Shown piece after piece: positions 13,821-56,900 of a stretch of DNA of 64,000 nt (the first letter of the stretch is position 1; each line of letters opens with the position of its first letter). The notes under the pieces were generated by a model. The model was given only the letters and a program-made list of their open reading frames with translations, searched no databases and had not been told where the DNA came from. The stretch is from Octopus sinensis (Eukaryota). The position numbers were made by a program, and so were the translations under genes. The stretch is taken from contig NC_043020.1 of the NCBI RefSeq assembly GCF_006345805.1, positions 11,842,001 to 11,906,000 of the forward strand, read 5' to 3'.

Positions 13821-14249
13821 CGAATCCGAAACCCACAATAAATCGTCCACATAGAAGCATGTATTGTTGACTGCACTCCCGGAAATAATAGATCCAATAA
13901 TATACGAAACACTGCTCGCCATAATTGTTTTTCTTCGGCCAAATTTGTCGCTGATTTTGGTGGCAATAATGGAAATAATGACAGCCACAGGTAAAGGTCC
14001 AGCCATAATTAACTGTTGCCAAGCGGTTGAAAGATGCATGGCATCTTTAACGAGAAGTACAGCCCCTGAAGATGCCCCCAAATCATATCCGACACACAAA
14101 ACCGACGACTGGGCTAGTGCTGAAAGAAGATAGATTATGAAGGAGGTCTTTCCCTCTGGTACTAATAATTCAACATTGGGATTAACTTGAACTTCAGGCG
14201 ATCTGTTTTCGGGATTTATTTTTCTGTCTTTGTTTGGATTTTCAGCCAT
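13821..14249 (-). CDS. SLC2A13-like: Variable first coding exon A of a sugar-porter/HMIT-like MFS transporter (N-tail + TM1-TM4); carries a 1-bp deletion near its 3' end
   Basis: ATG at 14249 (MAENPNK...GYDLGASSGAVLLVKDAMHLSTAWQQLI...DKFGRRKTI...). GTAAG donor at 13820-13816 after ...GFGF-G. Length is 429 versus 430 for paralog H: AACAATAC instead of AACCAATAC shifts the frame at AVN|Q. This is either a true lesion or a sequencing indel. Confidence 0.8.
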
Positions 14250-14849
14250 TTTCGACCAAATTAAATATTTGTTTACTGTCAGAATTCAAGCTATAGAAAT
14301 GAAAGTTTTAATCTAAACGTAACACAAATATTTGAGAGGAAAACACATAACACACATCTGTGTGTGTCTTTATGTATGTATGTATGTATGTATGTATGTA
14401 TGAATGTATGTATGTATGTGTATGTATGTGTGTGTGAATGTGTGCGTTCGTATATGTGTGACTGTGACGCCTAAATACATGCGAGCACATGATAATAAAA
14501 ACGTGTTTTGACGTATGCGTGTGTGTGTGTGTGTGTGTGTGTGTGTGTGTGTGTGTAAGTGTGTTATATAAGTGCATGAATGTATGTGAGCAGTTTCCTT
14601 TATGTACTAATTGAATGAAATGCTATAACCAATCCCCTACACACCGCCTACACAAAACCACGGTTTCTTAACGTGGCAATGGGAGGTCATTTACGTAGCA
14701 ACCGAGTCTGCTAGAAACAACAGCCGAACGTTGCACCAAACACAGTTTCCCCTCTCTGCAGAAAAGGAATAATCCTGGTCGGAGCGCTGATCTGCATCCA
14801 TCCAAGCAACATTAATAGTTATCTTGTTTTAGGGACAGTAAGAGTCCAC

Positions 14850-15278
14850 GGATCTTTTCGGTTTGAACGGCAGTTTTTTCTAGCGGTGTCATATGAAATT
14901 GTCACCCATAATTGTGACCCTAGTATCGATCTATTGCATTTCAATCTGTTTTAGGGTTAGGGTTAGCGTTAGGGGTGGGGGAAGGGTATCTTTTTTTCTT
15001 CACAAATGTAAATAAACCCAATCTGCTTCTTAAACGAGGGACATATTCATACGGCACAGAATGTTTTTTTTTTACCTCAATGGACGTCATTGATTGGTTG
15101 AAATTGCAGAAATTGCAGAAAAAAAACAACAACAAATATCTTACAAACTATAGAATTTTCTCAATAAAGCCAAGAGAAAAAGATGTTTTATAAACACATT
15201 GTACCAGTATACGAAGTTTAAAATTTTTTAGTTACTTGGAAATTATGTTAAAAACTGCCGTTCAAACCGAAAAGATCC
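14850..15278. mobile_element. Same MITE family, 8-bp TSD (GAGTCCAC)
   Basis: TIRs GGATCTTTTCGGTTTGAACGGCAGTTTTT / AAAAACTGCCGTTCAAACCGAAAAGATCC. TSD at 14842-14849 and 15279-15286. Confidence 0.9.
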
Positions 15279-53568: not shown

Positions 53569-53998
53569 CGAATCCGAAACCCACAATAAATCGTCCACAT
53601 AGAAGCATGTATTGGTTGACTGCACTCCCGGAAATAATAGATCCAATAATATACGAAACACTGCTCGCCATAATTGTTTTTCTTCGGCCAAATTTGTCGC
53701 TGATTTTGGTGGCAATAATTGAAATAATGACAGCCACAGGTAAAGGTCCAGCCATAATTAACTGTTGCCAAATGGTTGAAAGGTGCATGGCATCTTTAAC
53801 GATAAGTACAGCCCCTGAAGACGCCCCCAAATCATATCCGACACACAAAACCGATAACTGGGCTAGTGCTGAAAGAAGATAGATTATGAAGGAGGTTTTT
53901 CCCTCTGATCCTAATAATTTACCATTCAGGACATGTACATCCGCAGACGATTCTTTATCTGCATTTATACTTCTGCCTTTGATTCGATTTTCGGCCAT
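53569..53998 (-). CDS. SLC2A13-like: Variable first coding exon H (intact, 430 nt = 143 codons + 1)
   Basis: MAENRIK...LCVGYDLGASSGAVL...DKFGRRKTI...GRFIVGFGFG, GTAAGCAG donor at 53568. Confidence 0.88.
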
Positions 53999-56900
53999 TT
54001 TCGATCAAAATAAATTTTAGTTTACTGTCAGAATACAAGCTATAGAAATGAAAGTTATCTTAAACCAAAAATCGCTTAGTAATTGAGGGAAAAGAAATGG
54101 GGGGGAAATGCAGTTATCATGACCCCCTTTTCTCTCAATTTTTTTTTTACTCTTTCTTCGATCTTTTATCAGTCGCTCTCAATTTTTTTTTGTTGCCTAA
54201 TCTGACTATTACTATCACTCTTTTCCCTTTATCGCTTTCCTCTACTCACTCAGATCTCCCCCTTTCTTTCTTTCTTTCTTTCTTTCTTTCTTTCTTTCTT
54301 TCTTTCTTTCTTTCTTTCATTCCTTCCCTCTTTCTTACTTTCTTTCCTTCTTTCTTACTTTCTTTCCTTCTTTCTTTCTTCCTTCTTTCTTTCTTTCTTT
54401 CTTTCTTTCTTTCCTTCTTTCTTCTCGTCCCCTATCTTTCTTTCTTTCTTTCTTTCTCTCTTTCTTTCTTTCTTTCCTTCATTCTTTCCTTCCTTCCTTC
54501 CTTCCTTCCTTCTTTCTTTCCTTCCTTCCTTCTTTCATTCTTTCTTTCTTTTCGTCCCCTACCTTTCGCTCCCTCGCTCGCTCCCTCGCTCCCTCCCTCT
54601 AAGCTCTATCATCTATTAGTTATCGCATTCTCATGCCCCATCCCCCCTCACTTCACCTCCCGTCATCCTGTTAACGTCTATCTGACTTTGAATACCTCCC
54701 CCCCCCACTCTCCACTCTCCACTTCAATGTCGGATTTTGATAAACTATCTACAGAAACGAATTTCTCTGGTAAATAATAATAATAATAAAAAACAGAATT
54801 CATCACTCACTCACTAATACAAACTGATTACATAACACACGACCAATGAATGCCAATATGTCACAGCAAAATATTTACGAAATTTTGATATTGTTCTTTA
54901 GACCTCATCGGTATTTTGTAACCTTTTATATATCCGTCACGCACGCGTTCACACACATGCACACAAACAAACAATGCACAACAGTTTTGTGTTTCCGTAA
55001 GTCGCCCCACATGTCCCCTCATGAAACATAATACAACGACATTCGAAATATTTTTCAGTATCAAGAGCGGTTTTTCTTCCCAACTCTACCTATGTATGTA
55101 TGTATGTATGTATGTATGTATGTATGTATGTATGTATGTATGAATGTATGTATGTATGTGTGTGTTTGTGTATGTATGTATGTATGTATGATGTATGTAT
55201 GTATGTATGTATGTATGTATGTATGAATGTATGTATGTATGTGTGTGTTTGTGTGTGTATGTATGTATGTATGTATGTATGTATGTATGTATGTATGTAT
55301 GCATGCATGCATTTATGCATGCATTTATGTATGTATGTATGTATGTATGTATGCATGCATGTATGTATGTATGTATGTATGTATGTATGTGTGTATGTAT
55401 GTGCGGAATTTGAACTCAGAACATAAAGACAGACGAAATACCTATTTCTTTACTACCCCCAAGGGGCTAAACACAGAGAGGACAAACAAGGACAGACAAA
55501 CGGATTAGGTCAATAATATCGACCCCAGTGTGTAACTGGTATTTATTTAATCGACCCCCGAAAGGATGAAATGCAAAGTCGACCTCGGCGGAATTTGAAC
55601 TCAGAACGTAGCGGCAGACGAAATACCGCAAGAACGTGAAACATTTAGAAGACGATACAAAAAACACGGACGAGACATTCGAAGCCTTCAATCTTCAGTC
55701 AAGAACCGGATCATCTTCGCATTTCCGGCTGATTAATATATATGTATATATATATGTATATATATGTATTTTATATATATAGATATATATGTATATATAA
55801 TATTATATATATATTATATGTATAATATAATATGTATATATATATGTATATATATATCTATATATATTATATATCTATATATATATATAATATATATAAT
55901 ATATAATATATATATATATATATTATTATATATATATATGTATATATATATGTATATCCAGAACAGAGCACCACAAACTCACTCTGACAATTATAACAAC
56001 ATGAGACAGATAAATAGTAGCTTTGAACAATACTACACCAACAATTTTTTTAGCTCTTACACACAGGAACAGGGACACACGAGGGCAAAGGACAAACAAA
56101 AGAACCTCAGTAAATTAAGATAACTCTCAAACAAAGAACTTACACCTAACAAAATAAGCATACTCTCCAAAGGACTTAATTTCCACCTACCCCACACGTT
56201 CTAATTACTATGAAATGAAAGATGATTTTCGGGGAATTTTGCAGAAAACTAAGACTCACCGAGGCATTTCAAGACAAACAAATAGAGGAGGACTCATAGC
56301 TAGAAACAAGAGCAATTACACCCCCACCAAGGGAAAGAATAAAGCCTTAGACCGCTATTGTGACTACATAACTAATTTCCCGTTTCAATTCATCAAGAAA
56401 CAAAACAGCCCTAACTTCAACAAAAGAGAATGGAACGACCTCATCAAACTAAGAGAAGACAAAACAATAATAACATTAGGGAGCAGATAAGGGCAACGCG
56501 ATAGTAATAATGAATACAAACGAATTAAAAAATTTAGTGCTATCCCTATTAAAGATGATAAACGTATTATGAAAGGGCCCAACAGTATATCAGCAAAAAA
56601 TAATGCATAACCTTAGGACATTAATCAACACATACCAAGAAGGACTCACGAACAAGGAGTATGAATACATCACTAACTTCAAATGCAAATCGAGTTTGTT
56701 CTATGGTATCCCTAAGGTACAAAAGCCAAATAATTAGAGAAACGTGCAAAACATCCACTGACACACTCATCAAAATCCCTTCACCAAATGATCTTAAACT
56801 AAGACCGATAATAGCAGGGCCAGCATGTGAAACTCACCGCCTCAGCAATTTCTTAGACACACTTCTTAAACCTTTCCTAAAACACATCAAAAGCTACGTA

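Follow-up and report, generated by a model that had tools for sequence, protein, structure and literature searches.

To our knowledge, the textbook cases of variable first exons are all from vertebrates, and clusters whose alternative first exons are similar paralogues are rare. The vertebrate UGT1A cluster consists of variable first exons followed by four constant exons (PMC1885805, PMC3325998); according to a survey as cited in PMC1885805, few of more than 3000 human genes with multiple first exons have similar ones, these being PCDH, GCNT2, UGT1 and UGT2A. Only one paper linking octopus with 'variable first exons' came up, a review of clustered protocadherins.

We found a variable-first-exon cluster within one gene of Octopus sinensis. 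The window, the whole 64,000-nt stretch of DNA that was analysed (G000:C24:11842001-11906000), is free of any N and carries seven full-length paralogous exons, all on the minus strand: H (53569..53998, 430 nt), running from its ATG to the donor G/GTAAGC (the slash marks the exon end); G (51734..52127, 394 nt), ending in GFGC plus G/GTAAGA; F (47100..47484, 385 nt), with an intact open frame and donor; D (37414..37810, 397 nt), also intact; C (28018..28411, 394 nt); B (22796..23189, 394 nt), which is 2 nt apart from C; and A (13821..14249, 429 nt), which retains its ATG and donor and is frameshifted by the loss of one nucleotide after 13866 (a C where H has CC), the rest of the exon being intact. 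These places agree to the base with the original prediction, as do the donors, which are the lower coordinate in each pair. The six intact exons are all 3n+1 in length and close with GFG(F/C) plus G/GTAAG, splitting an identical Gly codon in phase 1; lengths and ends are exactly as had been predicted. The array extends beyond the window, with an eighth copy, Z, 12 kb downstream (window -12075..-12498, C24:11829502-11829925), giving the order 5'-H, G, F, D, C, B, A, Z-3' with an open frame in seven of the eight.

Every copy matches positions 2-117 of the 452 in Pfam Sugar_tr, corresponding to TM1-TM4 (E 4e-10 to 1e-13), and in a whole-genome search the copies match one another at E 1e-27 to 1e-76, far beyond chance. 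The eight full-length copies and two relics share a single orientation, and protein identity among the O. sinensis copies is 38-98%. A and H have 91% nucleotide identity. B and C are carried by two tandem 5.25-kb units (21954-27189 and 27205-32489, together 21954..32489) that are 97-99% identical; given this similarity, a haplotype artefact may have made two exons, B and C, out of a single one. Of the two to three decayed copies claimed earlier, we recovered two, both on the minus strand. Relic E (43998..44938) keeps the block found upstream of other copies and its ATG, has lost its 3' end and donor, and has a body with internal deletions, two SINE-like inserts and microsatellites (about 44783-44111); the second is a truncated 79-nt 5' fragment of F type (48238..48316) that retains the F-type upstream block.

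Downstream of the array we found exactly one constant region, eight GT-AG exons at window -41869..-57231 (42-57 kb downstream), with the exon-2 acceptor at C24:11800131. A single constant region leftward of position 1 had been predicted. The resulting nine-exon gene model, all GT-AG, reproduces a 582-aa RefSeq protein with 100% identity, and the gene spans about 111 kb of the minus strand from the start codon of H to the stop codon. The copies might still be tandem whole genes whose own downstream exons are hidden in long introns or gaps, and the cuttlefish Acanthosepion pharaonis does have several distinct whole-length paralogues of this family, some sharing one contig. In the O. sinensis window, with no N in which exons could hide, the explanation is effectively refuted: tblastn with the 440-aa constant part found no second TM5-12 or constant-exon set in 254 kb at E<=20, and, as had been stated, no TM5-12 sequence lies between the variable copies even at that threshold, the spacing between H and G being just 1.4 kb. 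Moreover, H, G and Z are joined to the same exon 2 in RefSeq.

These RefSeq records, which are Gnomon gene models that we matched by exact-sequence look-up, place one O. sinensis gene with five isoforms (X1-X5) in one cluster on one contig. X1 is exactly H plus the constant exons (584 aa; XP_029650495.2 and XP_036368582.1), X3 exactly G plus the constant exons (572 aa; XP_036368583.1) and X2 exactly Z plus the constant exons. X4 (475 aa) starts from a Met inside B or C, and X5 (454 aa) at the Met just past the frameshift in exon A (MLLCGRFIVGFGFG). At the level of gene models, each variable exon would thus be separately spliced to exon 2 in the case of H, G and Z, as complete proteins, and of A and B/C, as N-truncated ones, which supports the expectation of isoforms with swappable N-terminal thirds. 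We found no protein joining D, F or full-length B/C to exon 2 in any collection searched. The original prediction also knew of no description of the design for an SLC2-family transporter or in cephalopods, and no publication on such a layout in a transporter or a cephalopod was found in the literature searched; the isoforms themselves, however, are already annotated in RefSeq, and it is their architecture for which we found no paper.

We consider it likely that this is one gene with eight alternative first coding exons and eight constant exons, of which each mRNA carries one first-exon version. Each version encodes a divergent cytoplasmic N-tail and TM1-TM4; the donor of the chosen exon would be spliced over 29-95 kb to the single exon-2 acceptor, and the eight constant exons would supply TM5-TM12, so that the products would be common in two thirds of their length and differ in the N-terminal third. 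The locus shows the tandem array, equal length and phase, single constant set and birth-and-death that characterize variable-first-exon clusters of the UGT1/PCDH/GCNT2 type.

With UGT1A the octopus gene shares tandem similar first coding exons of near-equal length and the same frame before one constant set, an exon that forms an N-terminal module and could set specificity, a conserved motif at a fixed upstream distance, relics, lineage-specific duplications and conserved constant exons. Unlike UGT1A, it encodes a 12-TM MFS transporter that is cut within the N-domain, after TM4, rather than between folded domains; its variable exons are small (385-430 nt), its host is a mollusc and its upstream block is a putative promoter. 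The alpha and gamma protocadherin clusters resemble it in their many variable first exons, a conserved upstream element and, as far as the gene models go, long-range splicing of donors to the first constant exon. Neighbouring exons also bear marks of gene conversion in both: in the octopus, B, C and D are identical over their 3' ~97 nt. The octopus gene differs from them in having eight exons only, each encoding a third of the protein rather than nearly the whole extracellular and transmembrane part; stochastic CTCF-dependent promoter choice and a role in cell identity are features of protocadherins that we do not claim for it.

The array is accompanied by signs of birth and death: two relics, the frameshifted A and lineage-specific duplications, with Z and the constant exons conserved. 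In the orthologous locus of O. bimaculoides, a kind of comparison that the original prediction had called for, A/H-type, D-type, F/B-type and Z exons precede one exon 2, and isoforms X1 (A-type) and X2 (Z-type) are both joined to it. The orthologue of A is intact in this species and is the exon annotated in isoform X1. The B/C and A/H duplications postdate the split from O. bimaculoides.

A sceptical reading of these patterns is that only Z, perhaps with H and G, works, and that the other copies are by-products of segmental duplication that are decaying, their splicing to exon 2 being noise or absent. Z is the only copy annotated in O. vulgaris and Argonauta, and the 10 kb before Argonauta's Z-type exon yielded no non-Z exon. 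Z is under far stronger constraint (omega about 0.12) than the non-Z exons (about 0.5), with core pN/pS of 0.40-0.55 in orthologue pairs compared with 0.13 for Z; the A-H pair has a dN/dS of 0.86, A is frameshifted, relic E and the 48.3-kb fragment are dead, D and F lack an isoform on record, and the D-type copy of O. bimaculoides has lost seven codons of TM4 and had its 5' end replaced. Against this, copies whose proteins have diverged by 38-60% still have an ATG, an open frame, the common phase and a donor, along with 22 residues that never vary, the Asp/Arg pair among them, and the intact exons of O. sinensis and O. bimaculoides have six distinct lengths (430, 424, 397, 394, 385 and 352 nt), all 3n+1. 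A codon model of ten non-Z exons gave an omega of 0.505 (2dlnL = 31.7 versus omega = 1). A dN/dS of about 1, which, if only one copy were transcribed and the others showed it, had been named in advance as evidence against the proposal, is found for the N-tail (omega 0.96, 2dlnL 0.02), which evolves neutrally, but not for the TM core (omega 0.435, 2dlnL 35.2), which is under purifying selection. Set against their O. bimaculoides orthologues, D (core pN/pS 0.40, p=0.01) and F (p = 0.03) each reject omega = 1 as well; and RefSeq models from two species between them include exons of A type and B/C type as well as G and H. We regard a locus in which only Z, perhaps with H and G, works as improbable, and infer that D and F are in use alongside the exons with annotated isoforms.

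A conserved block of about 110 nt lies before H (53999..54110, minus strand), containing TCAAWTAY, ATAAYTTTCATT, CAGTAAAC and GATCGRAAATGG. The same minus-strand block precedes D (37811..37920), B (23190..23300) and A (14250..14360), and the block before C (28412-28522) is identical to that of B; the block upstream of F is rearranged relative to the other copies. It stands at a fixed distance from seven O. sinensis copies (H, G, D, C, B, A and relic E) and from O. bimaculoides copies 1 and 3, and is conserved although synonymous sites of the paralogues are near saturation. The block is either a core promoter or a branch point, pyrimidine tract and AG. By analogy with the UGT1 and protocadherin clusters we lean towards the former, with each version driven by its own promoter within the block.

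The alternative is mutually exclusive splicing from one promoter, in which a non-coding leader upstream of H would be joined to a CAG ~34 nt 5' of one of the eight ATGs and then to exon 2, making the variable exons internal cassettes as in Dscam. Dscam-type clusters likewise have tandem paralogous exons of equal phase, one per mRNA. The CAG is conserved, preceded by TTTCAT (YTNAY-like, at about -25) and a moderately pyrimidine-rich stretch, before A, B, C, D, G, H, relic E and O. bimaculoides copies 1 and 3, and if it were a 3' splice site rather than an initiator it would point to a shared leader exon; homology between paralogues ends about 60-110 nt 5' of the ATG, a distance that would suit either a core promoter or a 3' splice region. 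Furthermore, the identical H isoform stands under two RefSeq accessions, implying at least two transcripts that differ in their untranslated parts. However, the candidate acceptors are poorer in pyrimidines (fraction 0.60-0.70) than each of the gene's eight real ones (0.75-0.90), and an extra AG lies 13 nt upstream of the candidate in A, H and O. bimaculoides copy 1; a TATA-like ATAAY ~30 nt 5' of CAGT has the spacing expected for a TATA box and initiator.

Two further observations argue against one-promoter splicing. In cuttlefish, two transcripts with unrelated first exons and 5'UTRs are 95.6% identical from exactly the exon-2 boundary to the 3' end, and share no sequence, and so no leader, 5' of exon 2 over 5'UTRs of 197 and 419 nt; these transcripts come from runs of apparently two species, not one animal. 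No docking and selector pairing of the Dscam kind was found between the block after each donor and the 3 kb before exon 2 that were scanned: RNA pairing lay within the shuffled range for six of seven exons, and although B reached -27.0 against a minimum of -24.8 in 20 shuffles, its low-energy duplex site is common to D and F, whose energies lie within the shuffled range. Unlike those of Dscam, moreover, the octopus variable exons hold the start codon. One-promoter splicing is thus rather unlikely in our view, and a separate promoter for each version remains the reading that we favour.

The transporter itself is a sugar porter. RefSeq calls the gene 'proton myo-inositol cotransporter', a name given by homology only. 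Its H, Z and G isoforms match Pfam Sugar_tr (PF00083) over the full length with 299-312 bits, compared with a curated cut-off of 22.3 (E 1e-89 to 1e-93). This domain relates it to SLC2A13/HMIT and to the H+-coupled sugar porters GlcP and XylE (structures 4LDS, 4GBY). The best match of known structure is GlcP (E 6e-64), in which the Asp of the TM1 motif GYDxG and the GR of TM4 are aligned. Three motifs are invariant in 12 of 12 variable exons: G.D.G..S.A in TM1, GR in the loop and MLL.GR...G.G in TM4; those of TM1 and TM4 align to GYDNG and IGRLIIG of GlcP, and the loop motif encoded by each variable exon reads GR(R/K)(K/R). The TM1 Asp and TM4 Arg are presumably the proton-coupling pair of GlcP and XylE.

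Identity to vertebrate HMIT is about 33-37%, and a Cys-rich TM9-10 loop, CxxCxxDxxCGFCY, also occurs in the canonical HMIT-like protein of octopus. We considered that the gene might be the SLC2A13/HMIT orthologue and rejected this: a first-exon tree, built on 133 columns only, places all copies in a cephalopod-only clade (100/100) and the canonical octopus, Aplysia, Mytilus, Haliotis and Lingula proteins in a separate clade. On these sequence comparisons we place the gene among HMIT-like sugar porters in a clade restricted to cephalopods, which sets it apart from SLC2A13/HMIT, and we know of no variable-exon array at vertebrate SLC2A13. Isoforms may differ in trafficking through their tails, and perhaps in substrate or coupling through TM1-4.

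A broader reading can be offered tentatively, as possible rather than probable in its entirety. The gene would be a cephalopod-specific H+-coupled sugar/polyol transporter in which promoter choice among at least eight first exons diversifies TM1-TM4 and the N-tail, yielding tissue- or cell-type-specific transporters that differ in trafficking or transport. The array would go back to tandem paralogues that were stripped of their exons 2-9 and came to use those of the gene lying downstream of them, with a two-exon version already present in the common ancestor of octopus and cuttlefish. If this were true, no such cluster would have been described before in a mollusc or for a membrane transporter.

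One practical consequence follows from how the gene now appears in databases: annotation pipelines show 'isoforms X1-X5', truncated proteins and orphan single-exon ORFs, so octopus transporter counts and expression tables misassign exons unless the architecture is recognized. The locus also offers a tractable way to ask, outside vertebrates, how promoters are chosen and how splicing reaches over distances of up to 95 kb. Since the exchanged part ends inside the MFS N-domain, after TM4, and includes the helices bearing the Asp and Arg, the arrangement amounts to a natural domain-swap experiment on the modularity of the MFS fold. The solution known from the vertebrate clusters appears here independently, in a molluscan gene for a polytopic transporter.

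We recovered seven full-length paralogous exons in the window, all on the minus strand, from a stop-to-stop open reading frame list, a protein search of the whole Octopus sinensis assembly (G000; 2.72 Gb, 13,516 contigs; the window is C24:11842001-11906000) with copy D as query, and direct reading of the DNA, in agreement with the original prediction. Measured from ATG to donor, these variable first exons are H (53998-53569, 430 nt), G (52127-51734, 394 nt), F (47484-47100, 385 nt), D (37810-37414, 397 nt), C (28411-28018, 394 nt), B (23189-22796, 394 nt) and A (14249-13821, 429 nt), and every extracted segment ends exactly at the donor that had been predicted for it. 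The six intact exons (6/6) have lengths of 3n+1, as had also been proposed, and each stops after the opening G of a Gly codon, directly before GTAAG. Each copy matches positions 2-117 of the 452 in Pfam Sugar_tr, and the isoform beginning with H aligns with the solved H+/glucose symporter GlcP from TM1 to the end of TM4. Chance similarity among the copies was rejected by the whole-genome protein search.

Decayed copies, likewise anticipated, accompany the full-length ones on the same strand: nucleotide searches identified relic E (44938-43998), which retains its upstream block and ATG but is missing the 3' end and is broken by internal deletions and by two SINE-like inserts, and a 79-nt 5' fragment (48316-48238). 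The SINE-like unit, one frame of which reads ..GTEPGTMWLVSKLLTTQ.., sits in relic E at 44450-44580 and 44650-44770 and has many further copies across the window, most often beside TA/GT microsatellites, with similar open reading frames near 8890, 25257, 35182, 41737 and 43023. Compared with H, exon A is one C short after position 13866 but intact elsewhere; this one-base deletion (CC to C, minus strand, 13866-13871) is also seen against the intact O. bimaculoides orthologue, and could reflect a real pseudo-exon or a sequencing error.

The constant part of the gene lies to the left of the window, where the original prediction expected it. The genome search placed an eighth copy, Z, 26 kb downstream of A (C24:11829502-11829925, window -12075..-12498), and tblastn of 160 kb downstream and 30 kb upstream of the window, 254 kb with the window itself, with an intronless paralogue as query detected the later exons as one set. 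The top database match, a 582-aa 'proton myo-inositol cotransporter' of O. vulgaris/O. sinensis, is 100% identical to Z plus eight further exons. Threading it yielded a complete model of nine exons, all GT-AG, with exon 2 at window -41869..-42028 (minus strand) and the last constant exon, also on the minus strand, ending at -57231; the intron ahead of exon 2 ranges in length between 29 kb for Z and 95 kb for H. No other match to the 440-aa constant part was found in the 254 kb at E<=20, bearing out the claim that no TM5-TM12 sequence lies between the copies; tandem whole genes are ruled out, because the constant part is unique even at this threshold. Elsewhere in the genome the first-exon query matched single copies only, at three paralogous loci, and the array is thus specific to this gene. 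An uninterrupted, intronless 464-aa Sugar_tr open reading frame (E 4e-94) at G000:C14:17534711-17535997 (L028) could represent a retrogene or a sugar transporter gene of one exon.

We built the protein of each variable exon joined to the constant part and looked up the exact sequences. H plus the constant part is RefSeq isoform X1 (two accessions), Z plus the constant part is X2, with the same sequence as the O. vulgaris protein, and G plus the constant part is X3. Two shorter isoforms belong to the same 90% cluster: X4 (475 aa), whose first residue is a Met inside B or C (..GRCLVGFGFG), and X5 (454 aa), which starts MLLCGRFIVGFGFG, the first Met past the frameshift of A. In the O. bimaculoides models the first exon is of A-type in X1 and of Z-type in X2, both running into the same exon 2. 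From these isoforms, five of the eight O. sinensis exons are joined to exon 2, as Gnomon models rather than reads. No exact match to full-length isoforms of B, C, D, F or A (the last with its frame restored) turned up in the protein collection, and a search with D plus exon 2 as query, aimed at short fragments across the junction, gave only three O. bimaculoides proteins and a stand-alone open reading frame model of O. bimaculoides copy 3. The proposal that several copies share one exon 2 thus holds in the Gnomon models for H, G and Z as complete isoforms and for A and B/C from internal Met codons, with no record for D, F or full-length B/C.

Some of the copies are young or have exchanged sequence. 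Only 2 nt distinguish exons B and C, each of which occupies one of two tandem 5.25-kb units (21954-32489) that are 97-99% identical and bounded by GTAT/ATAC-type microsatellites; these units are either a very recent duplication or an artefact, one haplotype assembled twice. Over the 3' ~97 nt, exons B, C and D (22796-22930, 28018-28150 and 37414-37550) are identical, while their 5' parts are ~20% different, a pattern indicative of gene conversion among adjacent variable exons.

Protein identity is 38% for the most distant O. sinensis pair (G-Z), 85% for A-H and 98% for B-C, and despite this divergence ATG, frame, phase and donor are kept in seven of them; over two species the intact exons have six distinct lengths (430, 424, 397, 394, 385 and 352 nt), all 3n+1. 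Twenty-two residues are invariant in 12/12 copies, including G.D.G..S.A in TM1, the GR of the TM2-3 loop motif and MLL.GR...G.G in TM4; in the alignment with GlcP the invariant Asp falls in GYDNG and the invariant Arg in IGRLIIG, the two residues that form the proton-coupling pair of GlcP and XylE. A codon model of the ten non-Z exons gave omega 0.505, with omega = 1 rejected (2dlnL 31.7); the TM core gave 0.435 (2dlnL 35.2) and the 23-codon N-tail 0.96 (2dlnL 0.02). Core pN/pS between orthologue pairs was 0.13 for Z, as against 0.40 for D (p = 0.01), 0.47 for F (p = 0.03) and about 0.5 for both A and H. By these values, the membrane part of the upstream exons is constrained and their tails are free, and the constraint is clearly weaker than that on Z.

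The comparison with other octopods called for by the original prediction showed the same arrangement in O. bimaculoides, whose locus (L032, CM046624.1:10451973-10523367; 23.6 kb of N in 71 kb) has A/H-type, D-type, F/B-type and Z exons ahead of one exon 2. In its D-type exon, TM4 is short of 7 codons by deletion and the 5' end has been replaced. The annotation of this locus splits the gene, with isoforms of 284-286 aa reading through the exon-3 donor and the later exons called a separate gene. A first-exon tree gathers every copy into a clade confined to cephalopods (100/100), which is separate from the canonical molluscan HMIT-like proteins, including the octopus one. Z-type exons of Octopus and Argonauta form one clade (97/98), which the Sepia Z-type joins with weaker support (84/77), and octopus non-Z exons form a separate clade (92/99). 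Within the latter, F groups with O. bimaculoides copy 3 (96/91) and D, more weakly, with copy 2 (79/81), while A and H lie with copy 1 at a base that the tree leaves unresolved; G found no counterpart in the gappy O. bimaculoides sequence, and no non-Z exon was found within 10 kb upstream of the Argonauta Z-type exon. Since dS between A and H (0.11) is below that of orthologues (0.17-0.26), this pair, like B/C, was either duplicated after the species split or homogenised. The wider family is present in cuttlefish as several whole-length paralogues, so the octopus array may have arisen from tandem genes whose exons 2-9 were lost; no remnant of a constant exon, the expected trace of such an origin, was seen between the variable exons at E<=20.

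Homology between paralogues reaches ~60-110 nt upstream of the ATG and ~35-100 nt beyond the donor, and between orthologues it is longer. The upstream block comprises TCAAWTAY, ATAAYTTTCATT, ~20 nt on CAGTAAAC, and then GATCGRAAATGG; its GATCG element is present even at Z. One reading of the block is a TATA-like box ~30 nt ahead of a CAGT initiator, which would give each exon its own promoter; an equally good one is a branch point, pyrimidine tract and AG, at which a shared leader exon would be spliced to the CAG ~34 nt upstream of the ATG. The pyrimidine fraction of the candidate acceptors is 0.60-0.70, against 0.75-0.90 in all eight real acceptors of the gene, and this shortfall mildly favours the promoter reading. 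Two cuttlefish transcripts (Logan assemblies, L033-L046) help indirectly: one joins a non-Z first exon to a Sepia pharaonis-type constant part, and the other, which has a Z-type exon, apparently belongs to another species of Sepia. Their 5'UTRs (419 and 197 nt) and first exons are unrelated, with no shared leader seen, and from the exact exon-2 boundary through the 3'UTR they are 95.6% identical. Among the cuttlefish cluster members no same-species pair of isoforms was found in the collection, so alternative first-exon use within one cuttlefish is suggested only. One intron-retaining cuttlefish form ends ..GFGK*.

A 35-nt intronic block, GTAAGMRGAAA..ATTATTCTTG, is kept after all non-Z donors (for example 53534-53568, 51699-51733 and 37379-37413) and may be a splicing enhancer. 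Dscam-like docking found no backing: in a search for RNA duplexes that pair the block after each donor with the 3-kb interval preceding exon 2, no signal exceeded shuffles except a marginal value for B, at a site common to D and F.

Transposon fragments lie between the variable exons and beyond: a Mos1/mariner HTH domain (19208-19885, plus strand), a retroviral-type integrase core (42008-42697, minus), a zinc-knuckle gag-like open reading frame (33117-34171, plus) and a Penelope-like GIY-YIG endonuclease domain (57735-58361, plus), the last adjoined by reverse-transcriptase-like open reading frames at 56.6-57.8 kb. Low-complexity TCTT/CTTT-type and CCA/ACC-type tracts fill several kilobases at 121-4645, with long spurious open reading frames on both strands. 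A 226-aa Ser/Arg/Lys-rich open reading frame (63319-63999, minus) continues past the right edge of the window and has no Pfam match. It probably represents the final coding exon of the next gene upstream; the intergenic space ahead of H would then be at most 9.3 kb.

In the literature searched we found no paper on this locus, or on such a design in a transporter or a cephalopod; the view that the design is undescribed holds for that literature, although its isoforms are already in RefSeq. Judged by its sequence, the gene product is a bona fide sugar porter and is not the HMIT orthologue, because the first-exon tree sets it apart from the canonical HMIT-like clade. Clusters of multiple variable first exons (UGT1, GCNT2, UGT2A and protocadherins) are defined by similar equal-frame tandem first exons, a conserved motif ahead of each, one constant set, relics and lineage-specific duplication (PMC1885805; PMC3325998). 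The observation of the array is confirmed and its interpretation, as variable first exons on one constant set, is supported; in its anatomy the octopus locus corresponds to the structural definition of those clusters, and by analogy each exon would have a promoter of its own and every exon would be used.
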